NCBI GenBank assembly: GCA_965202585.1
Contig: OZ241827.1
Location: forward strand, 61,318,001-61,382,000
DNA: 64,000 nucleotides
Direction: 5' to 3'
Origin: Thalia democratica
Taxonomy: Eukaryota
The notes beneath the pieces were generated by a model, which worked only from the letters and a program-made list of their open reading frames with translations, made no database searches and was not told where the DNA came from. The position numbers were made by a program, and so were the translations under genes. Shown here in pieces: positions 2,723 to 47,500 of the stretch (the stretch's first letter is position 1; every line of letters begins with the position of its first letter).

Positions 2723-4510
2723 ATGGTTAAAAACAACAGTGAAATTAATAAGTTTATAACAAAGTTTCCACAGCACAAGGATTGCTTTCAACATATTTTT
2801 AAATTAGAAGAAGTATGTAAGAATGAAAAAATAAACGATGCTAAAAAACGTTTTGACGAAACAACGGAAACTCTAAATGAAAAAGCGATAAAGTTTTTTG
2901 AGTACAGGTCTACAAATTTTCAAACGTTGAACTCAGAAGAGTTTAAACTAAAACTTGAACTCTTGTCCAAAAACGACAAGGATTATGACGTAATTTCAAA
3001 GTCTCTTGATCCAAAAAAAACTAAAGATTCCACTGAAGAACAAGAACTTTCGATCCAGTTAGACACAAACAAAGCCTCTAAAGTCTTAATGATATACAGG
3101 GTCTTACCAAACAAAGACACGTTAACTGAAGCAAAAACATCAGACTGCTCAAATTTACTCTTGCTGCACGGCACTCAAAGGAAAAACATAGAAGGGATAC
3201 TAAAGGATGGTTTTAAGCCTTCTACTGGTGGGTTCAGAGGTCCTGGAGTCTATCACACCAGTTTGTTTGGTTACGCGTCTGTTTTTGGCAAGTTTCACGG
3301 ACAAAACGATGGCACGGCTAAAGCGTACACTTACTTGTTTGTCAACAAAGTGCGTCTGCAAAACGTCAAAGAAGGAAAGATGAAAGAAAGAGGAATTTTC
3401 GATCAGTATCTGAAGAGCGAACCTTTTGTGGAACTGTATAGGTATTCGTTTGAAAAGTACGAAAAACTGATAAATGAAGATTCAGGTGAAAATACGCACG
3501 ACAGTGAGAATAGCATAATTCCGGAAGGCACTTACCAGGTTGATGGTCTCAGGTTGAATGAAGTCGTTGCTCATCATGAATTGGTGACTCCTGCATATTT
3601 GATTGAAATTGAAGAAAACCAGAGCGTTGATATTTTCGTTGAAGACCTGCTTTTTGGAATTAGAGATGGCCTACGTTTGAAACGTTATATTGACGATGAA
3701 GTAGCTGCAAAAAAAAGATTGAAGTTGAAACAGTTTCGTAAAAGCAGTTCTTTAGTAGATGATTATGCAAATACAGGAGAAACTCGCACAGTAGAGTGTA
3801 TCATTAAAGCTGCACGTAGAAAACTAGAAGAAAATTATAAAGCAGAAGTACACTACATAGAAACGAAATTTGATTTAGAAATTAGCTCAGTAATGAAACA
3901 AATTCAATTTGACTTTATAAACTTTATAGGCAAAATTTCTAGCCAGGAAAATATGAAATACGAGTTAGAGTCACTGAAAACTGAAAACGAAGACTATCAG
4001 TTCATTCTGCAGTCATTAACAAGCGAAAAGTTCAGCAGCAACCCAAAGTTCCTTCACATGCTCAAAATTCACAGCATTGATAAAAGCGGAGAAAGCAAAC
4101 TGAAAGGCCGAAAGCTTTTATTGCACGGAGTTAAATCAAACCAAGCTTTCGACATTATCAGATCAGGTTATCCTGATACAATTCAGAAATGTGAGTGTTA
4201 CAGAAGGGAATTTATAAAGTTCGAATGTCACTGCTTCGCCACTTCGACGATCAGTAACGAAATTTCCAATGGCCTCAGCTACTGCAAAACGGAAGATGGC
4301 GCCGTTGAGAAGCTGTCGTTTGTTGTAGTTGGCGCCAAGAACATCGAATGTGATTTCGTAGCAGATGAAGAGATTAGAAAGCTGGACACTGACAGCAGAG
4401 GATGTTCTGTTCCTGGAGGATCTTTTATTGGCAGAAGCTGCGCTTGGGTCGAGTCTGTAGACCAGATGATTCCGGCTTATTTACTCATATTTAAACAAGA
4501 TGACTTTTAA
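2723..4510 (+). CDS. PARP-like ADP-ribosyltransferase with two tandem ART domains (595 aa, single-exon CDS), copy 1
   Basis: Domain 1: LLLHGT..NIEGILKDGF..G..GPGVYH..LNEVV..VTPAYLI (H-Y-E motifs). Domain 2: LLLHGV..IIRSGY..GLSYC..QMIPAYLL. AATAAA at 4560. Confidence 0.88.
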   Translation: MVKNNSEINKFITKFPQHKDCFQHIFKLEEVCKNEKINDAKKRFDETTETLNEKAIKFFEYRSTNFQTLNSEEFKLKLELLSKNDKDYDVISKSLDPKKTKDSTEEQELSIQLDTNKASKVLMIYRVLPNKDTLTEAKTSDCSNLLLLHGTQRKNIEGILKDGFKPSTGGFRGPGVYHTSLFGYASVFGKFHGQNDGTAKAYTYLFVNKVRLQNVKEGKMKERGIFDQYLKSEPFVELYRYSFEKYEKLINEDSGENTHDSENSIIPEGTYQVDGLRLNEVVAHHELVTPAYLIEIEENQSVDIFVEDLLFGIRDGLRLKRYIDDEVAAKKRLKLKQFRKSSSLVDDYANTGETRTVECIIKAARRKLEENYKAEVHYIETKFDLEISSVMKQIQFDFINFIGKISSQENMKYELESLKTENEDYQFILQSLTSEKFSSNPKFLHMLKIHSIDKSGESKLKGRKLLLHGVKSNQAFDIIRSGYPDTIQKCECYRREFIKFECHCFATSTISNEISNGLSYCKTEDGAVEKLSFVVVGAKNIECDFVADEEIRKLDTDSRGCSVPGGSFIGRSCAWVESVDQMIPAYLLIFKQDDF

Positions 4511-4565: not shown

Positions 4566-5259
4566 GTTAATAATAAATGTCTAATGCTTAATGTTACTTG
4601 ATTTAGCGTACAACTTAATTAAACTTTTTAAAATTGTTAAGTTGATAAAACTTTAATTAAAAATATATATTAAATAATTGAGCTTTTGTTCACCTAAGTT
4701 TGCATTTAAGGAAAATATGCGTTTTTCTTGAAATTATTACGCTTTTATCATGGCTTTAAGCTCAATATTTTAATTTGCCTCTGTTAAATAAAATGCTCAT
4801 TGATCCTAAGTCTTTTTAACCTGTTAAAATATTTTAAAAGTAAGTATAATGTATATATTAGCTTTGGACTAGAGTAATTTTATTTTTGAATTTTTTAAAA
4901 CAAAAAAATGTAGCATTTTTTTTAGTTTTTTAATAAACTTAAAACATTTTAACACTTTTCACATTTAATTGATAATTTATTTGTATATAGCTAAAGAAAA
5001 AGTTTTTTTTTTTGTTGAGACTTAAGATTATTTTATTGAATTCTCGAAAAATAATTTACTTTCATTTGATATTCTAAAAATATCATTATGCTTTTGTTTA
5101 ATGATTAAGCTTATATGTTTAAATTAAAAATGATAATTTTATAAAGATTATTTGTGCTATTTAATTTATGAAACCCTAGCTGAAAATAGTACAAGGTGTT
5201 CAGCTATTTCCACTAATGCGATCAATATTTTGTAAAAAAAACAAAAAGAAGTCGAGTTT

Positions 5260-6480
5260 TTGGATCAACATCCAACAACCCGAATTCTAACGATACACGA
5301 TTTTACGATCTGTGAAGCTTGTTTTGCATTATAAAACTGGGTCTTGTTTCTTTACAACCTTTCAATTAGTAGTCTGTTGAGTAACTACAAGTATTTCTGT
5401 TCAACATTCGTCATCTCGATTACTCACGGTTTACGATTTGTCGAGCTGTAAATTTTTTTTTCACACCATGAACGCATGATTTTTCCACAACCATTCAATC
5501 AGTAGTCTGTGGAAAAACTACTCTAATTTAGTTGAAGGACTAGTATCCGTCACTCCAATTATTCACGGTACACGATTTTTCGAACTGTTTAGCTAATTTC
5601 TTAACGATTAAAGCTTTATATGCTTTTATATATGCCAACAAGTAAATCAGAAGTCTCTGGAGAAACTACAATTAGTAAAGTTGATTTATCATCGACCGTC
5701 AACCTGATTTCTCACAGTACATGATTTTAAAGTTGTGAAGCTGGCTTATATATTATAAAGTTTAAAGATGGTCTTCTATAACTACTCAATCTGAAGTTTT
5801 TGGAGAAGCTACACCACTCAAGTTGATGGATCAACACCTGTTACTGCAATTACTCACTCACGGTACATGAGTTATCAAGTTGTGAAGCTGGTTTTTTATA
5901 AGATAAAGTTTAAAGATGGTTTATCCATAACCACTCAACCAGAAGTCTGTTGAGAAACTACACTTATTAAAGTTAAAAGTTCAACACCTGTCACCCTGAC
6001 TACTCATTCACGGTACAAGTTTTGTAGAGCTGTGTAGCTGTAAGGCTAAATAATTTTTCTACAACCTTCTAAAAAGAGTTTTGTTGAGAAACTTCACCTG
6101 GTCAAGTTAACAGATCAACATCCGTCATCCCGATTACTCACGATAACAGTTTCTTAGTTGTGAGGATGTTTTTGCACAATAAACGCTAAATATGGTTCCT
6201 CTGTAAAATCTAAATCAGAAGTCTATAGAGAAACTACACATTGTCAAATTGACGAACCAACATCCGTTATCCCGATCACTTTAGTACACGATCTATCGGT
6301 CTGTGTAGCTGGTTTCTTATCATGAACACTACACAAGGCTTAGCTATAACAGTACATTGGAAGTCTATAGAAACGCGACTCCTGATCAACCTGATGGATC
6401 ATCACCCGTCACCCCGATTACTCAAGAACTAAAATTAATTGATTTGTTGAAGCTGGTTTTGTACTATGAACGATAAACTT
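5260..6480 (+). repeat. Degenerate ~144-bp tandem satellite (about 9 units), sushi/CCP-exon related
   Basis: Recurring agtctgtggagaaactacacctggtcaagttgatggatcaacacccgtcaccccgattactcacggtacacga..tgtgaagctgg at spacings of about 134-150 bp. Confidence 0.9.
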
Positions 6481-6704
6481 GGATTGTTTACAAACTCTTA
6501 ATTTGAATTACAAGCTTTTAATAAGAAATAGCACTCCGTGTAAATTAAGTGTAAAATTTATAAGTTGGAATTAAAATATATATGTAAATTAATTATATCA
6601 GATTATATAGTGATAGGATGGATGTCGATTTTATTGGGAATAGTTACGTTTTCAGCTGTGCTAAACTTACGACTATTGTTAATTAACGATTTATTAAAAA
6701 GTGA

Positions 6705-6935
6705 ATACTGGTGCACAGGTGATGTTTTGTGCGAAAGTAAAACTTTCGTGAAAATGACGTTAGGCTTTGCAAAAGTGACGTTTAATTTGTGTTGCATTTA
6801 ATCGGGTGAGAATGTATTCAGGTTGAGAATAACTAAAACGGTTATAGATTCGAATGGGAATAGATCGATTGGGATTTGATTTTGGTTGCAATTAATCGAC
6901 TGTGAATGTGCGCGGGTTGAAACAGAAAATATACC
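6705..6935 (-). mobile_element. Foldback/MULE-like right arm (inverted modules)
   Basis: gtgcgaaag/tgcaaaagtgac units, then gggtgagaat/tgggaatag units; the end gtgcgcgggttgaaacagaaaatatacc aligns with 17477-17502. Confidence 0.55.
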
Positions 6936-9724
6936 AGGGCCGGTTTTGACTAATTATCTGTTTTCTGTGTACTCCTTGAAAAAAAAGAAGAAAAAAGAGG
7001 ATCTTAGATTAGATGGACTAAAAACGTTGTTTATTGACTTGATTTTGATTATTTATTAAACTTTGAATAATGAATGTTGAATTTATTACATTGAAAGATT
7101 AGAAAAAGTCAACATTTAATTTTTCTCTTTTTTGACCAGCTGTAATAGATTTAGAATTGAATTTTAATTATTATAAAATTAACACGCAGAAAAGTGATCA
7201 TTATAAAAAATGGGTTGTTGTGATACTTTAAGATAAACCCAGTTTGAATTAAAATATTTTTTTTAAAGCTTAAAATATAACTACAATGTATGTAAAGTTG
7301 AAACTTGATATAAATATGATTATTACGATTTAGTAATTGCTATCAATACATAGCAATTACTAATGTTTATTTATTAAGAACAAAAATAATTATTTTCTGC
7401 CCTGGTCATCTTCTAGAATCTGGAAACTACATAATGGCTTTTTAATTAAAAACAAAAATTTAGCTTCACTTGACTAAGGAAAGGAATATATCCAGTAACA
7501 GTTGTTTCATTTAGTATTTATATGATTTTTATTGAGCAGTCAAAATGCAGAGGCACCATTATGAAAATATTTTTGCATTTAATAACTTTAAATATTAATA
7601 AAGATTTAAATACAGTTTAAGAAATAATTTCAACTAATTTCAGTTTTAGTTTATATAAAGTATATGTTTAATTGAATTGTGATTTGTAGATATAGTTTTT
7701 TTTTTTTCAAAACATATCAACTACTAACATGCATTGATTAAGAACAAAATTAATAATTTGCAGCCCTTGTCATTTTCTATAAATTACATAATGGCGTTAC
7801 ACCCCCCTATGGCCTTATCAGATTTGAATATGCTTACTTATTGAATTGTTAAGTAATTACAAACATTAAATGAGAAGTAGTATACATAAAAATGAACACC
7901 TTGAATACAGATCTTATTAGTTGTTATCTTTTCATAGGTTTGCCATACAATTAGGCTAGTTTGAATTATATTGAAACCTTTTAAATTATAGACTAGTTTT
8001 TTATAATTAATAACTTTTCATACTAGTTTGTAATACTTTTTCTTATAACTTTGGTATGTTTAGATATTCAAGCTCAAGCTAAAACATGTTTTTTTTCTAA
8101 ATTTTATTTTTGAATAAGGCTTACACAGAAAAATTTTTACACCCAGTTTAAATAACTAAAAGAACCTGTAGAAATATTGTATGATTTGTTTGCAAATATT
8201 TGACAAGGTTTCTGTATACCTGAAAATTTTAAATTATAAATTATACCAAAATAACTGGAATAAAAAAGTCAAAAAATCTATTTTTAGGCTATTTTTAATC
8301 AATAATTGTAATTGAAATTTTGTACTAATTCCATTCAAACTTCAATAATCATGTACACTGTGAGATATATCTAAATTAACCAGGAACCACTGATAGATAA
8401 AAAACAGTTAGTCCACTTTATAATTCAATTACTTTTAAAACTAATTCTAAATTTATTTTTTTGCTATGCACTTTGCTTTTGTTTTAAAATTAAATAACAA
8501 ACATTTTAATAAATAACAAATAAGAAAGAAAAGAAAGTAAAATTGGGTGTTATAAGTTTTTATCTTTAAATAAGACAAAGTGATTACCTTCTTCTAGGTT
8601 TTTCTTTTTATACTTAAAACATGGAAAATAATTAAAAATATTTAAACTTTTTAATGATAGTTAGAAATACTTACTGTCTAAAGAAATTTAGTGCAATGAT
8701 TTAATGTTGAATCGATTATATTTAAAAATAAATTAGTGAATAAAGTAAATCTGATAAAGAGGGCTCTTTATGTAAATTTAGTTGGTAGAAGTAGTACAGG
8801 AAGTAGAAAATTTATAACTGAAAAATGTTTTCAATGTTTGGTTTAAAAAATTTTTTTACTAAAAGTAATAGAATTTAGGTTAGAAATAACACATGTATCA
8901 AACAATCTTTATTTGTATTGTTAATCATTATATTTAGTATATAACACAATTAAGTAGTGCTACAGTGTAGTTTTCAATAATTTATACTCTTTATAAGATT
9001 GCCAGTTGACAAACACTTGGAATACCCAGGATATAACTAATAACACTTTGAAATTTGTGAAAGTTTTAGGATAAGTCAGAATACTATGATTTTTTTTATA
9101 TATAAAAAATTCAGGATAGTTTAACAATTTTTTTAATCTCAGTACATATTTTTTCTAGATCTTGATAAGATTGAGTCAATATAATTTAAAATTTTGCTAC
9201 TTTTTTACCAAGCTTTGTTACAGAACTTAATTTTTTATGATTATAAAATTCTTTAATTTTTTATTTTTTACCCTTATGGGTAGCTCTTTACATTGTAGTA
9301 TTTCTTTTTAACTAGTATTGACATTCATGATAACTTGAATTTTTGTAAAACAGAAAAAAATTAGATGTTATCACAATCTTCAAAAGTAAGTATTTATACT
9401 TAGTTAAGTAAACATCAAATGTAAAAGAATTTATATACAGCTTATCTGTTTTAGTTTTTAAAAGAAAAGTAAACATGAAGTACAAAAAGTTTGCACAAGA
9501 AGCAAAAGCTTTTTTAAGGATGGTGAACATGCATTTTGGTAAAAGTTCTAAGGTAGTTTGTCACTTTTATAACAAATTAAAGCATAAGCACTTATATTTG
9601 CATAGAAACAACAACTTAGCAGTCTAAACCATTAAAAAGAACTGTTTAATTTTGTATATAGTTGGTACTTCATTAGCTGGTAAATATAAATTTTAAAGAA
9701 CAATAAACATGTACTGCAGAAAGT

Positions 9725-10035
9725 GGTGTACTAACAATTCCTATGCACTATTCCCACCTGCTTATTTCCCACCCGATCAATTCCGCCCCAAACGATTCTC
9801 ACCCGAGTCAGATCCCATCCGAACAGTTCACAACTGATTAATTTCAACCTAATAATTTCTCACTCGATTAATTCCCACCCAAGTTGTTCATCACTTTTGC
9901 AAGGATCTTTTTTTGCACGGTGTCATTTTCATACGGGTTTCATTTTTGCATCACTTTAGGAAAAGTATCTACTTTTGCATGACGTCACTTTTGAACCAGT
10001 CGTCACTTTTACAAAGATGTTATTTTTGAATAGTT
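9725..10035 (+). mobile_element. Foldback/MULE-like left arm, duplicate copy
   Basis: Duplicate of 2180-2490. Confidence 0.6.
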
Positions 10036-10267
10036 TAAAACTTTATCAATATAAAATATTTAAAGTAAATTAAACTAAGTTTCATTGAAATTTCATAAAA
10101 CTTAAATTTATCAAATGAATCTAAAAATATATTTAAATTTCTATTAAACAAAAACTTAAGTTTATTTAGTAAAATATATATTGAATTAATAATATATTTT
10201 AGTTTCGTTTAAAGTAATAAAAATTAATGTTTTAAAATTTACAGAAAGCTATAAGTATTAGAAAACA

Positions 10268-12055
10268 ATGGTTAAAAACAACAGTGAAATTAATAAGTTT
10301 ATAAAAAAGTTTCCACAGCACAAGGATTGCTTTCAACATATTTTTAAATTAGAAGAAGTATGTAAGAATGAAAAAATAAACGATGCTAAAAAACGTTTTG
10401 ACGAAACAACGGAAACTCTAAATGAAAAAGCGATAAAGTTTTTTGAGTACAGGTCTACAAATTTTCAAACGTTGAACTCAGAAGAGTTTAAACTAAAACT
10501 TGAACTCTTGTCCAAAAACGACAAGGATTATGACGTAATTTCAAAGTCTCTTGATCCAAAAAAAACTAAAGATTCCACTGAAGAACAAGAACTTTCGATC
10601 CAGTTAGACACAAACAAAGCCTCTAAAGTCTTAATGATATACAGGGTCTTACCAAACAAAGACACGTTAACTGAAGCAAAAACATCAGACTGCTCAAATT
10701 TACTCTTGCTGCACGGCACTCAAAGGAAAAACATAGAAGGGATACTAAAGGATGGTTTTAAGCCTTCTACTGGTGGGTTCAGAGGTCCTGGAGTCTATCA
10801 CACCAGTTTGTTTGGTTACGCGTCTGTTTTTGGCAAGTTTCACGGACAAAACGATGGCACGGCTAAAGCGTACACTTACTTGTTTGTCAACAAAGTGCGT
10901 CTGCAAAACGTCAAAGAAGGAAAGATGAAAGAAAGAGGAATTTTCGATCAGTATCTGAAGAGCGAACCTTTTGTGGAACTGTATAGGTATTCGTTTGAAA
11001 AGTACGAAAAACTGATAAATGAAGATTCAGGTGAAAATACGCACGACAGTGAGAATAGCATAATTCCGGAAGGCACTTACCAGGTTGATGGTCTCAGGTT
11101 GAATGAAGTCGTTGCTCATCATGAATTGGTGACTCCTGCATATTTGATTGAAATTGAAGAAAACCAGAGCGTTGATATTTTCGTTGAAGACCTGCTTTTT
11201 GGAATTAGAGATGGCCTACGTTTGAAACGTTATATTGACGATGAAGTAGCTGCAAAAAAAAGATTGAAGTTGAAACAGTTTCGTAAAAGCAGTTCTTTAG
11301 TAGACGATTATGCAAATACAGGAGAAACTCGCACAGTAGAGTGTATCATTAAAGCTGCACGTAGAAAACTAGAAGAAAATTATAAAGCAGAAGTACACTA
11401 CATAGAAACGAAATTTGATTTAGAAATTAGCTCAGTAATGAAACAAATTCAATTCGACTTGACAAACTTTATAGGCAAAATTCCTAGCCAGGAAAGTATG
11501 AAATATGAGTTAGAGTCACTGAAAACTGAAAACGAAGACTATCAGTTCATTCTGCAGTCATTAACAAGCGAAAAGTTCAGCAGCAACCCAAAGTTCCTTC
11601 ACATGCTTAAAATTCACAGCATTGATAAAAGCGCAGAAAGCAAACTGAAAGGCCGAAAGCTTTTATTGCACGGAGTTAAATCAAACCAAGCTTTCGACAT
11701 TATCAGATCAGGTTATCCTGATACAATTCAGAAATGTGAGTGTTACAGAAGGGAATTTATAAAGTTCGAATGTCACTGCTTCGCCACTTCGACGATCAGT
11801 AACGAAATTTCCAATGGCCTCAGCTACTGCAAAACGGAAGATGGCGCCGTTGAGAAGCTGTCGTTTGTTGTAGTTGGCGCCAAGAACATCGAATGTAATT
11901 TCGTAGCAGATGAAGAGATTAGAAAGCTGGACACTGACAGCAGAGGATGTTCTGTTCCTGGAGGATCTTTTATTGGCAGAAGCTGCGCTTGGGTTGAGTC
12001 TGTAGACCAGATGATTCCGGCTTATTTACTCATATTTAAACAAGATGACTTTTAA
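10268..12055 (+). CDS. PARP-like tandem-ART protein, copy 2 (595 aa)
   Basis: Intact ORF with 7 aa differences from copy 1; AATAAA at 12105. Confidence 0.88.
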   Translation: MVKNNSEINKFIKKFPQHKDCFQHIFKLEEVCKNEKINDAKKRFDETTETLNEKAIKFFEYRSTNFQTLNSEEFKLKLELLSKNDKDYDVISKSLDPKKTKDSTEEQELSIQLDTNKASKVLMIYRVLPNKDTLTEAKTSDCSNLLLLHGTQRKNIEGILKDGFKPSTGGFRGPGVYHTSLFGYASVFGKFHGQNDGTAKAYTYLFVNKVRLQNVKEGKMKERGIFDQYLKSEPFVELYRYSFEKYEKLINEDSGENTHDSENSIIPEGTYQVDGLRLNEVVAHHELVTPAYLIEIEENQSVDIFVEDLLFGIRDGLRLKRYIDDEVAAKKRLKLKQFRKSSSLVDDYANTGETRTVECIIKAARRKLEENYKAEVHYIETKFDLEISSVMKQIQFDLTNFIGKIPSQESMKYELESLKTENEDYQFILQSLTSEKFSSNPKFLHMLKIHSIDKSAESKLKGRKLLLHGVKSNQAFDIIRSGYPDTIQKCECYRREFIKFECHCFATSTISNEISNGLSYCKTEDGAVEKLSFVVVGAKNIECNFVADEEIRKLDTDSRGCSVPGGSFIGRSCAWVESVDQMIPAYLLIFKQDDF

Positions 12056-12104
12056 GCTTTTACTTTTAGTGATACATACTTAGTGAACAGCTTTTTAGGA
12101 TTTG

Positions 12105-12110
12105 AATAAA
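12105..12110 (+). terminator. Polyadenylation signal of ART copy 2
   Basis: AATAAA about 50 nt after the stop. Confidence 0.6.
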
Positions 12111-13726
12111 GTTTATTGATAAATGTCTAATGCTTAATGTTACTTGGTTTAGCGTACAACTTAATTAAGCTTTTTTAAATTGTTAAGTTGATAAAACTTT
12201 GATTAAAAATATTTATTAAATAATTGAGCTTTTGTTCACCTAAGTTTGCACTTAAGGAAAATATGCGTTTTTCTTGAAATTATTACGCTTTTATCATGGC
12301 TTTAAGCTCAATATTTTAATTTGCCTCTGTTAAATAAAATGCTCATTGATCCTAAGTCTTTTTAACCTGTTAAAATATTTTAAAAGTAAGTATAATGTAT
12401 ATATTAGCGTTAGACTAGAGTAATTTTATTTTTGAATTTTTTAAAACAAAAAAAAATTCTAAAAATGTAGCATTTTTTTTAGTTTTTTAATAAACTTAAA
12501 ACATTTTAACACTTTTCACATTTAATTGATAATTTATTTGTATATTAGCTAAAGAAAAAGTTTTTTTTTTGTTGAGACTTATGATTGTTTTATTGAATTC
12601 TCAAAAAATAATTTACTTTCATTTGATATTCTAAAAATATCATTATGCTTTTGTTTAATGATTAAGCTTATATGTTTAAATTAAAAATGATAATTTTATA
12701 AAGATTATTTGTGCTATTTAATTTATGAAACCCTAGCTGAAAATAGTACAAGGTGTTCAGCTATTTCCACTAATGCTTATGTATAATAACTACACCTAAA
12801 TACAAATGTTGGAAAGCTCTTTAAATATACAATATGCATACGGTATGCACAAATTAAATCTGCAATATGGGCCTATAAATTATATAAATAGAAATTAAAA
12901 TTAGTAAAAAGTTGTAGTCCTTCATTACAAAAGCTTGCAAGTCCCTTTTCTAGTAACTCCTGCAACAAAGTATAATATGTACTAACAAAAAAGTTTTCTG
13001 TATCAACAATAAAACCTTTAACAACAATTAAATTAAAAAAAATATGTTTTAGCTACTGTACCAGTAAATATTTTGTTAAAGATTTTTGTGGTTTTTGATA
13101 AATAAAAACTTTTATTAATAGTTGTTAAGAAGCTAAGGAAAATACTTCTAGTTTTATTTTAGTTTTAATCTTCTTTAGTTTTTTATAATTACATGTATGA
13201 ATAAAAAGATTCGGAATACATTCAAATATTAGTTTTCTAATACTATTTTAGACCGGATTCGAATGATTTCCTTTTAAAAGTTCAATACGATCAATTAGAA
13301 TCCTAAACAGCAAATAATGCAAAAAAAAACATTTCTAACTTTTACAAAATATAAATACATTAAATAAAGTTTAATAGTATTTTTAAGTTATTTTAAAGTA
13401 TTTATAGTATTTTTAAGTTATTTTTTAAGCAAGTTAGAAAATATTATTAAACTAAAAAACTTTAAAGGTGCACTGTCAAGACCAAATTGAGTTAAAAAAA
13501 GAATAATATTTACGTAAAATTTGTTTACATTTCTATTTAAAGATTATGTCAAAGTTACAGTGTTTTGTAAGATTTATTTGAATTAAAATAAGTACTAAAA
13601 ACTGAAATCTAGCATAAACAAGAACTATTTCTAAACTTACTTTTTGCCGTAAAACAACCTTTTCAGAGTAAGTATAAATTTTATAGTAATTGTAATAATA
13701 ACTTTATTTTTGAACATATATTTTAT

Positions 13727-15068
13727 GGGAACGGGTCACTTTTGCACGAGCGTCACTTTTGCACGAGTGGACACTTTTGCACGTGTGGACACTTTTGCAC
13801 GGCGACTCTTTCGCACGGAGGGTCACTTTAGCACGAGGGGACACTTTTGCGCGGAGGGTCACTTTTGCACGAGGGGACACTTTTGCACAGCGACTCTTTC
13901 GCACGGAGGGTCACTTTTGCACGGAGGGACACTTTTGCATGCAAGGTCATTTTGCACGGCGTCATTTTTGCACGGCGACATTTTTACACGTCAAAACTTT
14001 TGCGCGACGTTACATTTGCATGGTGACATTTTTGCATAGCGTCACTTTCGCACAGCGTTATATTGTCACGGATATACTTATGAACTGCAAAAATTTTAAG
14101 CAGTCAGTCAATTTTAAACGGAACTTTACTTTTGCACGCTTCTAGTTTTTATTTTCTTAAACAAAAGTTCGAATAAAGTTTTTTTAGTCAACTTAAATAA
14201 TATTCGCTTTTAAACGCAAGTTGTTTTAAATAAATTACATTGTTTGTCCTTGGTATGAATATTTTGTAAACATTTTTGTTTTATCTTCTCGTTAGTTTGT
14301 TTCTAACATAAATTATACTGTTTAAGACTTTTAAATATTTCACTTTTTGCCTTTAATATAAGTATGTTATAAAATTTTAGTTTTCCGTTTCTTTTTATGT
14401 TACAAATTTGGTACTAGCTAAAAAACTTTTTACCAAAATGCAATGTTGATTTTCCGATCGAAAAAGTCATCGTGCCAAAATGTCGCTGTGCAAAAATTTC
14501 ATCGTAAAAATTTGACATTCTGCAAAATTATAGTTGTGCAACATTGCTGCCGTAAAAAAATGTTATCGTGAAAAAATGTCGCTGAGCAAAAGTGTATCCT
14601 CATGCAAAAATGACGCCGTGCAAAAATTACCCTGCGTGCATAAGTGACGACCGTGCAAAAGTGTCTCGTCGTGAAAAAGTAACGCCGTGCAAAAGTGTCC
14701 CTAGGGCAAAAATGACCCTCTGTGCAAAAGAGTCGCCGTGCAAAAGTGTCACCTCGTGCAAAAGTGACCCTCCGTGCAAAAGTGATGCCGCGCAAAAGTG
14801 TCCCCTCGTGCTAAAGTGACGCTCGTGCAAAAGAGTCGCCGTGCAAAAGTTTCCCTTCGTGCAAAAAAGACACTGCGCGCAAAAGTGAAGCGGTGCAAAA
14901 GTGTCCCCTCGTGCAAAAGTATCGCTCGTGCAAAAGAGTCGCCGTGCAAAAGTGTATCCTCGTGAAAAAGTGACCCTGCAAGCAAAAGTGACGCTCGTGC
15001 AAAAGTGTCCCCTCGTGCAAAAGTATCGCTCGTGCAAAAGTGATGCTCGTGCAAAATAACACCCACCC
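13727..15068. mobile_element. Non-autonomous foldback/Mutator-like element
   Basis: Long inverted arms of 15-18-bp cttttgcacg units (13727-14140 and about 14460-15068); GGG...CCC termini; perfect 9-bp TSD atattttat at 13718-13726 and 15069-15077. Confidence 0.85.
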
Positions 15069-15438
15069 ATATTTTATATAAGATTATGATAAAAATATTA
15101 AACAAAATAAAAGAGGTATGAAAACTATAAGCGGTAGAAGGAGTAAAACAAGTAGGAGAAATAGAATAATTTTAGTTATTATTTTTTATTACTATTATTA
15201 AAAACAAAACAGAATCAAATATCTTATAGTTGAAGTTGGTTGACTAGTTAAGTAATTGGTGTAAACGCAAGTTTAAGAAAAGTAGAGATTAAAGATTAAT
15301 TAAATCATATAACTTACATATTTGAGTTTGAGTTATTTCATATTAAGTTGGTTGTTTTAAGAATAATAGTTTTCTAAGTAAGAAATATATAAAAACTTAA
15401 AAAGTCTGATACGGGTTTTGTACTACGGTGTTGTTAAT

Positions 15439-17502: not shown

Positions 17503-17569
17503 GTTATTACTTAACTACTAAATACACACTTTTGCAGCAACTACGCTAAACTTTTTTTTTAAACTTCTA

Positions 17570-18713
17570 AATCAGAAATCTGTGGAGAAACTGCACCTCA
17601 AGTTGATGGATCCTCACCCGGAACCCGATTACTCACTAAGTAGACGATCCGTCAAGTTTTGAAGCTGTTTTTGCACCGTGAATGCTGGAAATAATTTCTA
17701 TCAAGCTCTAATTCAGAAGCCTGTGGAGAAACTACAGCCGCACAACTGAATCAGCCCCCGTCACCCAGATTATTCACGGTATCACGGTTGTCGATATGTG
17801 AAGCTGGTATCGCGACATGAACGCTAGACATCGTTTCTCCACAACCGTTCAACAAATAGTCTATGAAGAAACTACATTTGGTCAAGTTGGTGGATAAGCA
17901 CCCGTCACCCCTATTACTCATGATACACGATTTGTCTATCTGTTAAGCTGGTTTAACATTACGTACGCTGGACATAGTTTTTCTACAACCATTCAATAAG
18001 TATGGATCTACAACCTCTTAATCAGTAGTCTGTGGAGGCATCAGCACCCGTGACCCCTATTGCTTTGAGTACACGATTTATTGAGTTGTAAAAATGGTTT
18101 CGCACAATGAACGCTGAACTAGGATTTTTCACTATCTCTCAATTAGTATTCTCATGAGAAAACACACCTGATTAAATTGATGAATCAGGACCCGTCATCC
18201 CAATTGTTAATGGTAAACACTTTGCAAAATGGGGGCTAAACATGGCTTCTCCAAAAATTCTTGTTCAGAAAGTTATCAAGAATCTTGGTCAAGTTTGATT
18301 ACTGACACGGTACACGGTCGATCTGTGAATTTGGTTTCACACCTTGAACGCTGGAAATGGTTTGTCCACTTCTTTTAGTAAGTAATCTGTGGAGAAACTA
18401 CACCTGGTCAAGTTGATGGATTAACACCCGTTACCAAGAATACTCATGATACACGACTTGTCTATTTCGCAACAAGAACACTAAACACAGTATCTCCATA
18501 ACCGTTCAATCAGTAGTCTATGGAGAAGTTCAATCAATACATTTGGTCAAGTTGGTGGATAAGCACCCGTCACCCCTATTACTCATGATACACGATTTGT
18601 CGATCTGTTAAGCTGGTTTAACATTATGTACGCTGGACAAAGTTTTTCTACAACCATTCAATAAGTATGGATCTACAACCTCTTAGTCAATAGTCTGTGG
18701 AGTAACTACACCA
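17570..18713 (+). repeat. Second array of the ~144-bp CCP-related satellite (about 8 units)
   Basis: Same consensus as 5260-6480; a full unit at 17798-17941 measures 144 bp. Confidence 0.9.
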
Positions 18714-19943
18714 TCAATTCAGATTTATTTTAATTGTAAGTTAAATATCTATTAATACTATTATAATAGAAATTAATTCAGTAAAAAATGAACAACGTTT
18801 ACGCAGTTATTTTTGACAACACAAAAAATATATCAAAAATAAGAATGATTCCAGTAAAATTTTCCAAAAATTTTCAATTTGAACGCTCAAAGTTAAGCAA
18901 AGTATTTAAATAAATTTAGTGATATGATTGACAAGAAACTGTTTATACATAATTTACTTTAACTAAAACGTTGAGAAGGGTCTATAACTGAAGGTTTATT
19001 TTTGGCATTGATGTTGAAGTTACAAAAAATAAGATAAATTTTCATAATTTATATTTTAGGTCAAGTGCTTAAATAAGTAAAGTCACTGTCTTTAATTAAT
19101 AAACATTCACTATATAAGCTTTTAATAAGGATATTTTCACAATTAGTTATTTTCATATACAATAAATAAATTGAGTTATAGTTTTCCTTATTTAATATTT
19201 ATTTGCAGTTTGCATTGGGTGGCTTTAAAAAATCAAATGGTGCCTGCGTGAAAGTTTCTTCAAGTCATCCAAAAATTTTCACAGGAAGTTGTTGTAATGT
19301 TTGCCAATTGCAATAAAAACTAGCTGAAAACACAATATTCGCTGTTTTTATAAGCACCTTACTGTACAAAGTTGTTTAAAAATTTGAAAATTATTAAAAA
19401 TGAAAACAATGGTATACTCACAATTCCCATCCAAATTTTTTTTTCACTTCTTTTCCTCTTTATTTATTTTCTTATTTTTTTGACCTTAATCCTTACCCTG
19501 TACTTTTATTCATACCAATTTTCTTAATAAATTATTTTCAACTACAACTAAGCGTGTCCCGAAAATAATACATATATTTGACCTACTATTAACAACTATT
19601 AAGGTAATTGGCTATCATTAAAATTTTCGAATGGAATTAAATAGTCTTGAAAGTTATTTTTACGCAAAACGTTACCTTTGTAGCATAATAAGCTGGATAC
19701 GTCAACTACATCAGGTGTTGTCCCACCACATTCTGCCTTTAGATCAGTGTTGGAAGCGTAACCACTTTCACATCTAAAGTCAACCTGGGTACCTTGTTCA
19801 ATTGGTAGATTAGGTGGTGATCCGTTTACTGTTGCCGTGGCATAATCAACTGAAGGAATACTGCTGAACTCTGTGACAAAAGTCAATTATATTAAAGATA
19901 AAATATTACCGGAAAGAGTCAGATGAAACTTTTTATTAAAGGT
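18714..19943 (-). repeat. Dispersed duplicate of the main gene's exon R and flanking intron (source 45221-45785 plus 46690-47434)
   Basis: tcaattcagatttattttaattgtaa at 18714/45221; homology ends at ttattaaaggt 19943/47434. Confidence 0.92.
19676..19870 (-). pseudogene. Orphan CCP exon R' (copy of 47166-47360), first Cys changed to Phe
   Basis: 195 nt, phase 1-1, AG/GT intact; EFSSIP versus ECSSIP. Confidence 0.75.
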
Positions 19944-35621: not shown

Positions 35622-36077
35622 CTGTTTATTTTACTTTGAGATTTACGCTGTAATACAGTTAAAATGAATCCGCTGTGATTTTTTCGGTAAAAGAGATGAA
35701 GAAAAAATCAAGCATGTCAGTTGGTTTTAATTTTATATGCAAAGTTGTGTACGTCCAATGTTACTAAATTTTTTTGTTGTTGTTAGTTTGCTAACTAAAC
35801 CAAAACTTAAGTTGTTTATTATATTCTTAGGATGTGTTAGTTTACTAGTGAAACACACATAATTGATCGAGATTTAAAAGCTGGTAATAAAAGAAATATT
35901 TTTACTGTTAACAAGTATTTTTACACTAACTCATGTCATAATCAAATTGTATAACATAATGCTGTTATGTTTTAAAGACAAATATATTTAAAATAAAACT
36001 TACAGCTTTTCACTGTACAGCAGACAAACATGCATATAGCTTTTACTTTTAGATTTCAAACAAATGCAATAAATAAC

Positions 36078-37865
36078 TAGTGATGTACCGGACTCACTAT
36101 CCGGGTCCGGGTCCGGCCGGATATTGCCATTTTTGTCTGATATCCGGATCCGGCCGGATTCTAATTTGAAAAAAAAGTCCGGATCCGGTTCCGGCCGGAT
36201 TTTAATTTGAAAAAAAAGTCCGGATCCGGTTCCGGCCGGATTCTAATTTGAAAAAAAAGTCCGGATCCGGGTCCGGCCGGATCCTAACAGAGATCCGGCC
36301 GGACCCGGATCTAGTTAGTAAAAAAGAGCATACTGAAAAGTATTTTTCCAAAAACAAACCCTGTGTAAATTAATAAGAGTCATTTTCGTCAGCTAAAATT
36401 AAACATCTACCGTGATTGGCTCATTTTGTACATGTGACTAATTTACATTTGTTTACATTTAAACTATGAAATAAACATTTCAGAAATGCAGCTCATTACA
36501 TATGCAGTAAAATTGAAAACTTTGGAATAAATACTTGCATTATTTATTGTTTAAAGTTGAGCTCAGAGAATATTTAGAGTTAATACGGTTGAATGTAAGA
36601 TCCGATGAGAATCATATGACAAAATGTTTCAAACTAAATACTGACACAACAAAACATCAGAACATGACAGGCAGTTTATATGTAAGCAGTTAGTTAATTT
36701 GGTGTGCAGCTTGAAGCAACAAAATATCTTGAACTTTTTTGTGAATGTTTATTGTAAGTAGTGTTTTGTTTTAAAAGTGAATAATTCAACTGGTGTTTAA
36801 TTGTTTAAATATTTAAGCCAGGTTTGTAGTTTAATAGTTTATTAAAAATTTAACAGTTTCTTGTTTACTAAAAGTTTTATTTTATTTTTAGTTTATTGTT
36901 TTAAGTCTTTTGAGATAGATTTAAATAGCTTCCAGTTTTTAAAGTGTTACCAAAGTAATTAATAGTTTTGTATATGCTAGTATTTCTTATTGTGTTTTAT
37001 ATAAAAGATTCATCACTCAAAACTGTCGTGTCTGATTATAGAAAGTAGTCTCAGTTAGAATTTAGAATTTGTTAGATATTAGTTAAATAAGGTAGGATTT
37101 AACTATGATGGGTAGTACTAATAGGTTAAGTGTACCACAATCAGTACACAACTTTACTACCAAATTGTCAACCCTTGCTAGCTGTTCTACTGATTATTAG
37201 ATTAAAGTAATTTTTTCAGTTTTTAAAAACCTCATTCTGACTCAGGCTTGTTTATATTCACTCTAGCTAGTTTTATTGACTTAAACAGTGGCAACCCTGC
37301 TAGTTAGAAAATTTTTGGGAATTTTAGAAATCTTGGACTGCCTCAGGCTAGTTTAGTTTTTTATAAAAACTCAGGCTAATTTTCTTTTAGATTTTGAATG
37401 AGTTTGAGCTGATCCAGTTTTCAATAGTTTGTAGTTTTCTAGTGTATTTTGTTCAAGAACTTGATTTCAGATTTTTAATTGTAAATAAAACCTAAATTTG
37501 TAAACCTTGTGGCTAGCTGTTCTAACTTTTATTAGATTAAAGTTTTTTTTTTCAGTTTTTAAAAACCTCATTCTGACTCAGGCTAGTTTATACTAGTGAT
37601 GTATTGGACTCACTTTCCGGGTCCGGGTCCGGCCGGATATTGCCATTTTTGTCTGATATCCGGATCCGGCCGGATTCTAATTTGAAAAAAAAGTCCGGGT
37701 CCGGTTCCGGCCGGATTTTATTTTGAAAAAAAGTCCGGATCCGGTTCCGGCCGGATTCTAATTTGAAAAAAAAGTCCGGATCCGGTTCCGGCCGGATTCT
37801 AATTTGAAAAAAAGTCCGGATCCGGGTCCGGCCGGACCCGAAATTGTGGGTCCGGTACATCACTA
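36078..37865. mobile_element. 1,788-bp composite hAT-like element
   Basis: TIR tagtgatgtaccggac / gtccggtacatcacta; 8-bp TSD taaataac (36070-36077, 37866-37873); empty site at about 27773-27781; internal ~41-bp CCGG-rich tandem repeats. Confidence 0.92.
37594..37865. mobile_element. Inner 272-bp MITE (second left end plus shared right end)
   Basis: tagtgatgtattggactcac.. repeats the 36078 left arm. Confidence 0.85.
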
Positions 37866-38173
37866 TAAATAACCTTATAAAATATTCTAGTCTATACTAA
37901 AACATTCTACAGTGTTACGATGACTTATTAGGTAATTTAAATATGAAAAAATGTTTTACTACAGCACTTTAATGATATATATCTAACTAGGTTTAAACTA
38001 AACTTTAAAACTAAGAAAAAAATACAGAGCCATAAAATCTAAATGAAAAAAGTACAAAGTTTTATTGAAAGGAGCAAAAACAAAATAATTTAAAAACAGG
38101 AGCTCATAAAACAAATACAAAACTTCAACACCTTCAAGCGCTGCGCTCTGCTTCGCACAGCTCAAATTTCTTT

Positions 38174-38510: not shown

Positions 38511-41500
38511 CTGTTTTTTTATTTTCAGATTTACGCGGTAATAAAGTTCAAATGAATCCGTTGTGATTTTTTGCGGTAAACGAGATGAAGAAAAAATTAA
38601 GCATGTCAGTTGGATTTAATTTTATATGCAAAGTTGTGTACGTCCGATGTTACTCAAAAAATTGTTGTTATTTTGCTAACTAAATCAAAACTTAAGTTGT
38701 CTGTTATATTCTTAGGATAGGTTAGTTAAATAGTGAAACACACAGAATTAATCGAGATTTTTAAAGTTGGTAAAAAAGAAATATTTTTTATCGTAAAAAA
38801 GTACTTTCACACAAGTTCAAGTCATTATCAAGTTGTCAAACGAAATGCTGTTTTGTTTTATAGACATACATATATATATATATTTAAAATACAACTTACG
38901 GGTGATACATTTTCCCGTCGGGTCCCAAGTTTTTATATATTAGGTCTCCACTCATTTCTTGACATTGCTCCCGAGCCTGGTTAAACGTACCCTTTTTTTT
39001 CGTTAAGCTGAACTCGTATTCCCCTGTGAGTTGTTAGTGAGTCAAAAATAATTCAATAAGAAACCAACATATTAAGCATTTTCGTCAAGGTACAATTTTA
39101 GTAAAAAAGGTTTTAGTTTATACAAATTAAGCTTTTATTTGGTCGTTATGTTTATGTGGTTTATTTCGTAATTATGCTTTTTATGTTGGTGAAACTAAAA
39201 ACCTTAATTTAATTAATGATTTTTAACTTGAAATATACTCATCAATTAGTGATGTTTAGATGAATAAAGTACAAAAACTGGTAATTTGAATCATCGCAAG
39301 CGTATCTAGTCATGGTGTAGTCAGTAAAGTCTAGTTCTACGATTTTCACATTGAAATCGTCCGGGGTTGGTAGGGGAGGACAAACTTAATAAAACTGTAG
39401 TTTAAAATCCAATAGTTTTAACGCATTGTTGAAACATGCTTGTGTTATCTATAGGCTAAAGATTATACAAATTTTAACGTTTAAAATTTTTATAAAAAAC
39501 TCTAAAAAAGCAATAGTTTTGGTTCAAACTTTTTTTGTTTGTTGTTTTTTGCTTACTTTTAACGCATTCTGCGTTTTCTGACCACCCATCTACAGTGCAT
39601 GTAGTATAGTTGCTTCCAGAAATACGTATAAATCCTTGATTACATTCGTAAGTTATTTTGACGCGCCGTACAAGCTGATCTCCTAAATATCTCTCTTCGA
39701 TATTATAAGATGCATTAGGTATTGCTGGACACCTCACATCTATTTTTTATCAATAGTGTCACATACAGAAATAAAAACTAATACAAACATCTCAAGTGTT
39801 AAAAAACTCTACACATACTAAGTAGAAATTTAATCTTTTATGTAAATAACAAGATTAGTACTTTCATGACATTCCGGTGTTGGTATTTCACAGAGCACAT
39901 TCATTTCAAACGTAGAGCTTCGGTCGATTAACATTTGTTGTTTTGAGAGGGTTACGTAGTCTTCAGCAGGAAAAACGTGGTTGGGCTCACCAAATGTCCA
40001 AGTGTACTTCACATCTTCTTCTTTTGTCGGCGTCTCACCGTGATCCTTGATTCTTGAATCTTTATCTGTCTCGTACGCTATTGAGTTGTCTGACACAAAC
40101 TTGAAGACTTGTTCGGTTTCCGAATCACTTATACCGGTCCAGCACTCCCAGGTGAAACCTGATAGAGTGTTTTCTATCACACTGTAAAAAACATTAGCGT
40201 CAATATTTTTGAAAAAGAATGCAATAAAACTTTAGTTAACCCGAAAGAGCAGTGACGGAGTTATCGGAACTGCAACTTATACTGGCTGTTAAATATTTTG
40301 ACTCTGTAATTATTTTTTGTCGTAGATATTTTAGATTGCTTGCTTTAATTAAACTCATTCAAAAGAAATTATGAACATTAAACATACAATGTTTGTTCGT
40401 TCCGATACTAACACTATATAAAGGACCGTTGAGCAATTTTATTCGGGCCGCTACTTATGTTTAGTTAAAAAAGTTTGTAGTATACAAATAAACATAAAAA
40501 ATCATTAAAATTACAAGTTTGATATAAATTAAGTTTTAAGTAAACTTTAAGGCTAATTACATTGTTACATGGCAGACTGAGACCGGTTTCGTCCTTATTA
40601 GGACTCATCAGTCACTCACAACCAAAAAACTTGCAGTCATCACAGACTGATGAGTACCAATAAGGAGAATCCGGTCTCAGTCTACCGAAGGCTTGTGGTC
40701 TGATGATCTAATCGGCATGATCAAACCTTATGTTAAACATGAGCTTGTCTTACGGCATACGAAAGTCCACGCTTAGCCTCTGTAGACTTTCGCCGATGTT
40801 TTCGTTGTTAGAAATAACTAAATCAATAAAATAACTTATTATTTTTGCAAGAAGTGACATAGTTTACATTTCACATATAAGCTTAAAGTCAATGGAGAAA
40901 AACAGTAAATTAAAGTTGGTATATACTTATTAATAAAATAATTTGTTTTATATTATTTATTCGACAGCTTTGCGTCGCATTACAACATTTTCGACTGAAA
41001 TTAAAAACAATAAAGCTAAGTAAAATAATTATCAAAAAAATTCGAAATGTACCCAAAAAGTTAATACGAAAATAACCTAATTAGAAAAACTTTATCTTAA
41101 TTAAATACTCCTGATATTTGTTAAATCTTAATGATTATATTTTCTATACAGCACCTCTCCCTGAAAACCATTTTTTTTATTAACTGTTTTTGTATTTTAC
41201 AACCTAAGGTAGAAACTTCCATAACTGAGTTTATAAACTGCATAAAAGTGTAAAATAAATTCTCATTAGAGATTCAAACTAAACAAGTTCGTTAAAATGT
41301 AACAATAATTTTGTACTTAGTTCAAAAAAGCAATTACTTTTTACAACTGAGAAATTAAGTGGGTTTATCAAAGTTTTTAGTGCAGTTCATATAAATACTT
41401 ACCTGTTTAAAAATATTATGCTATTTTATATACTAAGCTTAGATAAAAGTCTCCTATATTTCCAAGTTTTAATGCAAAAGTGACCAAAGTTTAACAACAA

Positions 41501-44500: not shown

Positions 44501-47500
44501 TCAAGTACAAAACTTGGCATCAAGTTAAGTGTATTATATATCGGGTAACTAATACACACATGAGGGTACTCAATAAGTTTCTAAAAAGAAAAAATTATAT
44601 ATTTTTTTTCGGGTCAATGAATCTAGCAATATTTTTCTACATATAACTTTTTAGACTTTATTTAAAGTGAAAGTTTTTTGATAAAAAACATTTTTATTTA
44701 TTTCTGTGCTATCAAATAAAGAGAAATTTGTGGCAAACCCACATAATCAATAACTGTGATATACTACTCAATGATGTTCACATTTTATCAAGCTATTTTG
44801 CAAAATTTGTTTGCAGAAATCAAACATTAAGACTTTAGCTATTTGTGGTAAATAATATTTCTATGGTATGAGCCTAAAATTATTTACTTTAAAAAACCCA
44901 CTTGAGTCATACATCACGAATGCAAACTTATCACTAAATCGATTAAGATTTATCGCTTTTATAACAAAACCGGATTAAAAAAAAATTAATTGCGAAATTC
45001 ATAACCGTTTTGATATCTTATAAATTATAGAAAACATCTTTATTTTGTACATAAAACAATAAAGTAACTGATCCGTGTCACTGATCAAAATTAATAAAAA
45101 ATCGTTACTATTATATTATTAAGTAGATTTAAGTATAATTTGCAAATAAATATAAAACCAGATAAAAAAAGATTATTTTAAAATTTTGAAAAAGATAATT
45201 TCAAGACTACAGCTGAGTGATCAATTCAGATTTATTTTAATTGTAACTTAAATATCTGCTAATACTATTATAATAGAAACTAATTCAGTAAAAAATGAAC
45301 AACGTTTACGCAGTTATTTTTGACAACACAAAAAAAATATATCAAAAATAAGAATGATTCCAATGATTACAACATTTTTTAAATTTGAACGCTCAAAGAT
45401 AAGCAAAGTATTTAAATAGATTTAGTAATCTGAATTGATAAGAAACTTTTTATACATAATACTTTACTTTAATTAAAATGTTGAGAAGGGTATATAACTA
45501 AAGGTCTACTTTTGGCATTGATGTTGAAGTTACAAAAAAACAAAATAAATTTTTATATTTTATATTTTAGATCAAGTGCTTAAATAAGTAAAGTCACAGT
45601 CTATATAATTAACAAACACTCTCTATATGAGCTTTTATTAAAGATATTTTCACCATTTGTTATTTTGATATACAATATATAAATTGAATTGTAGTTTTCC
45701 TTATTTAACATCTAATCTACAGTTTGCATTGGGGTGGCTTTTAAAAAATCAAATGGTGCCTACGTGAAAGTTTCTTCAAAACATTAAAAATTAACGCAAT
45801 CTAAAAAGATTAATCTATTTTGTGAAAACTGCATCTTAATTACACTCAATGTTTTTGATACTGTGAGATTAATTACTTACAGCCTCAAATATATACACAA
45901 TAAAAATATATTTTCCGATTTGTTCTAATTATATATAAAATACACGTTTTATGTTTGACCAAAATATACATTTCCTCAAAAGGTCCATCAACATGTTTAT
46001 AAATATTTTTTCTTAAATTATATTTGTTTGTAGAGACTGTTTTTAAAAATCAATGGTTACATGGCAATTCAAACTCTTATAGAAAAGTTTTTTAAGTAGC
46101 CATATATCAATAAGTTATATTTTTAAAATAAAATCTATGGTAGGTCTAAGATCACAATGGTAAAAAACACACTTAAAAAAACTATATAACAGAACATTAA
46201 TAATTACTATATTTTAGTGAGTTTTAAAACTTATTTAAGCTAAATTTTATTCATTAGATTAATTTTTAAATAGATTAAAATGCTATTGTAGGTCTAACAA
46301 TAAGATTATAATGGTAAATTACTTTGGCTTTTAAACATTTATTAAAAGAGATGATTATCAACAACTCAGAATTATTAAAATTTGAGTTATTAAAGTCCAA
46401 TTGTCAGAACTTTAACAGACGTGCACCCAAAAATTATACAATGAATGCATAAAGCTATTCAAAACTGTGTAAGAAAGTATTATAAAAGTGCTACTAGATT
46501 TGATGTAACTTTTATGACTTTTTGTAAGTTTTCTTGAATTTCTAGCTACTTTTTTAATCAAGAAGTGCCTTCACAAACTTAAGTTGAATCGTCTTAAATT
46601 GTACCAAATTTTTTTGTTATAATTTCCATATGTAAAATATTTAAAAGCTAAAAACTTTAAGGTTGCATTTCTGGATCCCAGACAGTTCGCATTGGAGGGG
46701 CTTTAAAAAATCAAATGGTGCCTGCGTGAAAATTTTTTCAAATCATCGAAAAATTTTCACACGAAGTTGTTGTAATATTTGCCAATTGCAATAAAAACTA
46801 GCTGAAAACACAATAGTCGCTGTTTTTATAAGCACCTTACTGTGCAAAGTTGTTTAAAAGTTTGAAAAACATTACAAATGAAAACAGTGGTATGCTCACA
46901 ATTCCCATCCAGAACTTTTTTTATTTCTTTTCCTCTTTATTTATTTTCTCATTTTTTTACTATCACAGTTACCCTTAATCCTTACCTTGTAATTTTTATT
47001 CATACCAATTTTCTTACTAAATTATTTTCAACTACAACTAAGCGTGTCAAGAAAATAATACATATATTTGACCTACTATTAACAACTATTAAGGTAATTG
47101 GCTATGATTAAAATTTTCGAATGGAATTAAATAGTCTTGAAAGTTATTTTTACACAAAACGTTACCTTTGTAGCATAATAAGCTGGATACGTCAACTACA
47201 CCAGGTGTTGTCCCACCACATGCTGCCATCAGATCAGTGTTGGAAGCGTAACCACTTTGACATTTAAAGTCAACCTGAGTACCGTGTTCAATCGGTAGAT
47301 TAGGTGGTGATCCATTTACTGTTGCCGTGGCATAATCTACTGGAGGAATACTGCTGCACTCTGTGACAAAAATCAATGATTTTTAAAGATAAATTATCAC
47401 CGTAAATAGTCAGATGAAACTTTTTATTAAAGGTAATGTCACAATCTAAAAAATTTATAATGTGTGATAACCGAACTCGTATTAAATTCTTTTTTTTAAT

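Follow-up and report, generated by a model that had tools for sequence, protein, structure and literature searches.

Two tandem arrays in the window (the whole 64,000-nt stretch of DNA that we analysed) are built of units that sequence comparison identifies as homologues of a family of sushi-like exons. The arrays are probably the fossils of a non-coding tandem-repeat family that was founded by an internal interval of such an exon (nt ~40-166, with a core of 123 nt). We call these exons R-type, after exon R, a member that lies in the same window. In the founding event, two similar sites within a single exon would have been joined, whether through unequal exchange, slippage or microhomology-mediated circularisation, and the resulting duplication would then have expanded. 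Coordinates of the arrays, the exons and the relevant breakpoints are collected in Table 1.

Table 1. Repeat arrays, R-type exons and duplication breakpoints in the window.
Feature	Position	Strand	Description
Array 1	5211-6488	+	9 diverged ~142-bp units, non-coding as predicted from sequence; exon-only profile matches 8 units, best E 5e-8 window-wide
Array 2	17562-18712	+	~8 units of the same repeat family as array 1, some partial; exon-only profile gives 8 matches, best E 3e-9
Exon R	47167-47358	-	192-nt member of the sushi-like exon family, flanked by canonical AG/GT splice sites
Exon R'	19677-19866	-	recent copy of exon R (91% over the surrounding segment), ~960 bp from array 2
7.55-kb duplication junction	5212-5220		at ~5216, cuts into the array
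Array 2 right edge	18710-18716		coincides to the base with the R/R' segmental duplication breakpoint

A preliminary description of this DNA had reported a head-to-tail array with a 144-bp consensus, a frameshifted translation containing CEAGF and a stop in every frame. The array is indeed present, with nine head-to-tail units beginning at ~5211 and a start-to-start spacing of 134-150 bp. The tandem unit stands as well, but its length has to be corrected to ~141 bp, with a consensus of 141 nt for the window units and of 138-139 nt for the family. Because the units of array 1 are too diverged (mean pairwise identity 63%, range 53-74%), Tandem Repeats Finder at default settings called only 2.7 copies (5648-6040), and the units were instead defined via seed-based repeats and profiles. 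In one frame the window consensus reads ..SEVC.ETT..QVDGS.SVTPITHGTRF.., and one base out of register it reads ..CEAGF... Stops occur in all six frames of the consensus and the longest unit ORF is 47 aa; as had been proposed, the arrays are now, by this translation, non-coding. Identity within a window array is no higher than identity to other arrays, as would be expected if the arrays drifted without homogenisation. In Rfam, at gathering thresholds, no family matched any part of the window (40572-40685 included), and the repeat unit is thus not a derivative of a known RNA gene. Array 1 was also found in public contigs labelled as two organisms, with ~2% differences, and the contig depth across it is similar to that of its flanks. 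Separately, a segment of ~200 bp located ~450 bp past array 1 (6926-7127) is a very abundant short dispersed repeat, whose summed contig depth reached 10^4-10^5 in two runs as against ~200 in its neighbours.

The similarity between repeat and exon is significant, collinear and strand-specific, and it is seen in both search directions. With a profile of the nine window units, the best matches outside the arrays were the two segments of exon R that the preliminary description had aligned, found in exon R and in its copy R' (E 0.67, 0.93 and 3.6). With a profile of 59 units from six genomic arrays, the same exon R/R' matches improved to E 0.019 and 0.041 and lengthened to 71 nt, and the alignment to the exon contained a 2-nt gap at the position of the frameshift. 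An exon match that improves with a better estimate of the ancestral unit is as predicted by true homology. We then scored the repeat profile against 20 members of the exon family (~150 copies), sampled genome-wide and picked solely by protein similarity to exon R. Eleven of the 20 scored 9.8-21.6 bits, while the maximum was 8.9 bits in 6,000 dinucleotide shuffles of the exons and 8.4 bits in 6,000 codon shuffles. This is the shuffled-control comparison that had been suggested earlier, and its outcome, up to 21.6 bits for exons against at most 8.9 in 12,000 shuffles, favours descent from a sushi-like exon.

In the reverse direction, a nucleotide profile made from exons only (17 of them) was run over the whole window, on both strands, at E<=1. 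It returned exons R and R', 16 array units and one marginal site, and every one of the 16 unit matches (E 3e-9 to 0.3) lies on the + strand. The same profile matched nearly all units in the arrays on contigs C1, C6 and C470 and in the C2 array upstream of the window, with scores of up to 38.7 bits. Each match spans exon positions ~39/47 to ~166, and successive matches abut. At the protein level, an HMM of the exon family gave 37 matches of at least 5 bits to + strand translations of the arrays and none to the - strand, with a mean of 0.6 for shuffled arrays; BLASTP of a natural unit ORF against an exon gave two matches, at E 5e-6 and 0.003, whose order is permuted. Pfam found no family at E<=10 in eight natural unit ORFs, the generic Sushi model included, and the repeat profile matched none of roughly 25 other sushi exons in the window, indicating that the likeness is specific to the R-type family. 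We regard the homology of the repeat units to this family as established. The earlier view that the repeat was born from a sushi-like exon is therefore upheld, with exon-only matches down to E 3e-9 and shuffles far below the exons.

Exon R, which translates as CSSIPPVDYATATVNGSPPNLPIEHGTQVDFKCQSGYASNTDLMAACGGTTPGVVDVSSLLCYK, is one of at least 150 copies of a 192-nt exon family in the genome. A six-frame genome search with its peptide found ~150 exon copies and recovered no array unit. Against Pfam PF00084, six of these exons scored 16.7-21.7 bits, with only one exceeding the gathering cut-off of 20.7. Of 20 aligned exons, 18 have all four cysteines (in R' the first position is F, and L034 is gapped in the column of the third), and a tryptophan between Cys3 and Cys4 is absent from all 17 exons aligned in full. 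The predicted product of the R-type family is a divergent, Trp-less sushi-like module.

Which member of the family served as donor is a separate matter. Exon R had been named as the source, but it is not identifiable as the specific parent: unit consensuses are 61-65% identical to exon R and 59-68% identical to other subfamilies (per-array consensus against each sampled exon), so that none is discriminated, and paralogues on other chromosomes outscore exon R against the repeat profile. DNA searches of the genome with the array sequence returned arrays only and no exon, from which it follows that no exon is a close parent. The search for an open-frame array or a parent gene that had been recommended likewise yielded no open-frame array in the genome and no close parent exon among the 20 sampled. 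The unit is a mosaic of subfamily features: CGETTPG links it to the C5 relatives of exon R, PVTPI to the C10 subfamily, and SAPVT..HGTR..CE.GF.P together with TSQS..CG to a widespread CTTVPSV.. subfamily, one exon of which has an exact 18-mer in common with one C1 unit. The donor may thus have been an early or now lost member of the family, or one equally distant from all surviving subfamilies.

The unit is collinear with the inner two-thirds of the exon (nt ~40-166), and the point at which successive units meet can be read directly. The unit-to-unit junction is ..GGTCAAGTTGA|TGGATCAGCACCC.., where the left part matches the second site of the exon, ..CCTGGCCAAGTTGAC.. (codons PGQVD), and the right part matches its first site, ..AAyGGATCAGCACCCGTC.. 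(codons NGSAPV). The two exon stretches are similar, with ..GTn AAy GGA TC.. encoding VNGS and ..GTT GAy GTA TC.. encoding VDVS, and they share ~8 of 12 nt in most family members. Successive units abut where these stretches would join, in agreement with the junction proposed earlier at the VNGS/VDVS microhomology. The accompanying claim that the unit equals the interval between them fails, as equivalent positions in the exon are 123 nt (41 codons) apart and the unit, at 138-142 nt, has ~17 extra nt and a 2-nt loss. The extra nucleotides follow the GF(A/V)P codons and precede those for T(S/T)QS. All array consensuses have in common this ~17-nt insertion, the 2-nt loss that shifts the frame before CEAGF, and the resulting in-frame TGA; the last common ancestor unit was thus already non-coding.

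These shared lesions weigh on the alternative that the arrays are the wreck of a coding repeat, in which a 41-codon in-frame duplication would have made an expressed exon of repeated two-thirds sushi modules. Such a start is compatible with a core of exactly 123 nt, with which the first duplications would keep frame, and many genes of this genome are built from tandem sushi exons. However, the frameshift, the stop and the 17-nt insertion common to all arrays mean that the ancestor unit was already broken; no long open frame is found in the arrays or in runs of units (the longest, of 123 aa, lies at one array edge); and the first and last codons of the exon and its splice sites are kept at no array edge. 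We consider a former coding repeat rather unlikely. As for founding by an internal exon interval, the data fit both in-place unequal exchange or slippage and a small circle copied and reinserted elsewhere. A route via such a circle would account for the lack of any array inside a parent exon.

For the arrays of this window, the earlier suggestion of birth in place is not borne out. Their orientation is opposite to that of the local exons. Exon nt 1-38 and 170-192 were found at none of the array edges, although all edges are truncated or rearranged and this observation is hence not decisive. In addition, the edge of array 2 is the junction of the much younger R/R' duplication, in which 18713-19277 matches 45220-45792 at 88% with no array left of 45220. 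With the two copies of this duplication 88-91% identical and the array units only ~63% identical to each other, array 2 is far older, and its nearness to exon R' is secondary. The extent of array 1 was also set by duplication. It was copied, at 96% identity, from units 9-17 of an array of 17 units directly upstream of the window, and it has only nine of these because the junction of a 7.55-kb tandem duplication (1-5219 matches 7551-12776 at 98.9%) cuts into it.

The window has other features as well. Within the 7.55-kb duplication are two 98.9% identical intronless ORFs of 595 aa (2723-4510 and 10268-12055, +), which carry PARP/ART-like motifs (..LLLHGT..GF..G.GVY..). A different, low-complexity tandem repeat (13704-15105) starts ~900 bp after the second copy ends at 12776, and has long overlapping open frames on both strands (..FARRVTFARGDTFA..). 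In the lectin-exon region, 36069-36287 and 37592-37904 share a tandem/dispersed repeat with locus L016 on C6 (6725-7690) at 77-91% identity; this repeat overlaps an ORF at 37588-37863 that contains ..RIRPEPDPDFFFKLESG.. repeats.

Rather than forming one local satellite, the arrays belong to a low-copy family on seven contigs, part of it carried by a transposon. The family comprises ~130 assembled units, or ~18 kb of the 802-Mb genome, with a head-to-tail tandem arrangement of a defined monomer at seven places beyond array 1. The whole region is present a second time on C5 as a segmental duplicate (98% identity). C1 holds an array of 12 units, the last six of which are two copies of a three-unit higher-order repeat; the arrays of C6 and C9 have three units each, and C4 has a pair of partial units. 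The unplaced contig C470 ends within an array of at least 54 units, whose near-identity points to recent re-amplification. A six-frame genome search with a natural unit ORF revealed neither a further locus nor an array with an open frame. In common with satellite DNA, the repeat has a tandem monomer and is non-coding, but at ~130 units it does not show the long arrays and high copy number of one, and it is better called a low-copy, satellite-like tandem-repeat family than a major satellite.

An abundant dispersed element, for which a first look gave 757-895 candidates genome-wide, has copies on both sides of the C1, C6 and C9 arrays. The canonical element is ~920 bp long with terminal inverted repeats (5' end CAGGGTTTCCCAACC, 3' end GGTTGGGAACCACTG), and several copies are flanked by 8-bp target-site duplications. 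An example is C5:28615829-28616759 (L039, 526-1449); copies are 83-89% identical, and short derivatives of ~440 bp occur. The termini of hAT transposons begin YARNG. Judging from its ends and the 8-bp duplications, the element is probably a non-autonomous hAT-type transposon. The C6 and C9 copies of the array are 92% identical over exactly 1,177 bp, and each is a composite in which 290 bp from the 5' end of one element are followed by three units and then by a complete short element, the whole being bounded by the outer inverted repeats. Each composite has different 8-bp duplications matching at 7 of 8 positions, CACTAAAG/CATTAAAG on C9 and CCGAAGTA/CCCAAGTA on C6. Since each carries its own target-site duplications, the units reached new chromosomes by composite transposition.

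This bracketing of the C1, C6 and C9 arrays by the same element, and the clear transposition of the C6/C9 composite, raise the alternative that an element captured an exon fragment first, that the fragment became tandem inside it, and that all arrays are eroded insertions. Against this, no repeat unit was present in any of ten element copies (eight canonical ~920-bp copies and two short derivatives), and the C1 units lie between the 3' end of one element and the 5' end of another, outside both. Moreover, an element profile found no match in the window at E<=1, and no trace of the element was found in the flanks of the C2 and C5 arrays, the oldest, or of C470. The transposon association would thus be later than the origin, and we judge capture before amplification unlikely. 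We return to founding by an internal exon interval, for which a full path from coding exon to mobile satellite is plausible, if short of probable. A 41-codon interval would have been joined at a 12-nt microhomology, possibly by way of a DNA circle copied by rolling circle, to give a non-coding array; the array would have been enclosed by two hAT-like elements, moved by composite transposition, and re-expanded on C470.

Whole sushi-like exons have also multiplied in tandem elsewhere in the genome. At C8:58168972-58180047 (L036) and on contig C1519, a near-identical 341-bp unit occurs in at least 33 repeats; it consists of a 192-nt sushi-like exon with AG/GT sites and a 149-nt intron, and belongs to the family of exon R (37-43% aa identity). 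At C5:17939900-17941200 (L037), a tandem array with a period of ~296 bp contains related sushi-like exons of alternating types with splice-like borders, reading ..VSHGTTVSYYCKTGYSP..CGSTTPGSIDISDI...

Such exon-plus-intron arrays of the R-type family might in principle have given rise to the ~142-bp unit, through a deletion from VDVS to the next VNGS that then spread through the array, and the junction produced would be identical. We think this very unlikely, however, because the unit retains nothing resembling an intron or a splice site, its extra segment amounts to only ~17 nt and is located in mid-unit rather than at the junction, and the deletion would have to reach every unit. That an unrelated repeat resembles sushi exons by chance or composition deserves next to no credence: single segments compared with just exon R reach marginal E values in the window (0.019-0.67), but exon scores far exceed those of 12,000 shuffles, strand specificity is strict, nearly every unit covers exon nt 40-166 collinearly, and window-wide E values go down to 3e-9.

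The arrays of the window probably have no present function, given the lack of open frames, of an Rfam family and of homogenisation, and too little identity to the sampled exons for small-RNA pairing. The longest exact matches between the window arrays and the 20 sampled exons are 10-14 nt. Small-RNA or antisense regulation of the CCP gene, which the preliminary description had raised, is implausible, as the best 21-nt windows have 4-5 mismatches to exons R and R'. The case points to no new molecular function. Its interest lies in a clean worked example of coding sequence entering the repeat pool, in which part of the interior of a coding exon is the donor and the microhomology locates the join with a precision of a few bases. 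The subsequent decay, segmental duplication, transposon-mediated movement and re-amplification can all be followed within a single genome. The example suggests that genomes rich in tandem sushi exons, this one among them, may keep feeding their repeat pool.

Several known systems resemble parts of this history. Human LPA kringle IV-2 and the long homologous repeats of CR1 are coding exon-intron tandem arrays, and with CR1, LPA and the 341-bp arrays on C8 the present case shares its domain type and the propensity of sushi-type exons for tandem multiplication. In LPA, CR1 and C8 the units comprise entire exons plus introns, with splice sites intact and frames open, whereas the 142-bp unit is a frameshifted internal exon fragment that has no splice sites and lies outside gene models. 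Stellate/Su(Ste) of Drosophila, human D4Z4 and other macrosatellites are gene-derived tandem repeats, and there too the tandem unit descends from a protein-coding gene. Stellate and D4Z4 units, however, are kilobase-sized, comprise whole genes or large parts of them and are often transcribed or translated; here the source is a 123-nt exon piece, and the unit is of nucleosome scale like that of classical satellites.

The transposon phase has closer counterparts in the DTC84 MITE of the clam Donax trunculus, with short satellite-like arrays associated with a DNA transposon (PMC3879986), in the Helentron-carried arrays of the Pacific oyster (PMC7492417) and in the transposon-associated short arrays of Tetris in Drosophila virilis (PMC4079207). 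These share with the present case short arrays scattered over many euchromatic sites, the movement of some of them by a non-autonomous DNA transposon, and the potential to seed longer homogeneous arrays. In contrast to these, the repeat here comes from a protein-coding exon instead of transposon sequence, and it is not a structural part of the element but is enclosed between two copies that moved as a composite. In the DTC84 type the array is a fixed internal module of the element; here ten copies lack units, and units lie between two copies.

The sources of satellites given in a 2025 review are transposons, rDNA spacers, micro- and minisatellites and older satellites (PMC12692304, section 4.1). 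In our search of the open-access literature, an internal exon fragment serving as a non-coding monomer was not among the sources in that section; the word 'exon' is absent from this review, and in a 2017 review (PMC5615363) it matches only 'exonuclease' in a reference title. If the full path outlined above is true, exons would genuinely be a source of satellite DNA, one that has so far gone unlisted. The course of events would nonetheless follow the general scheme for satellites (PMC12692304, PMC5615363), in which a seed duplication is succeeded by expansion, dispersal and re-amplification.
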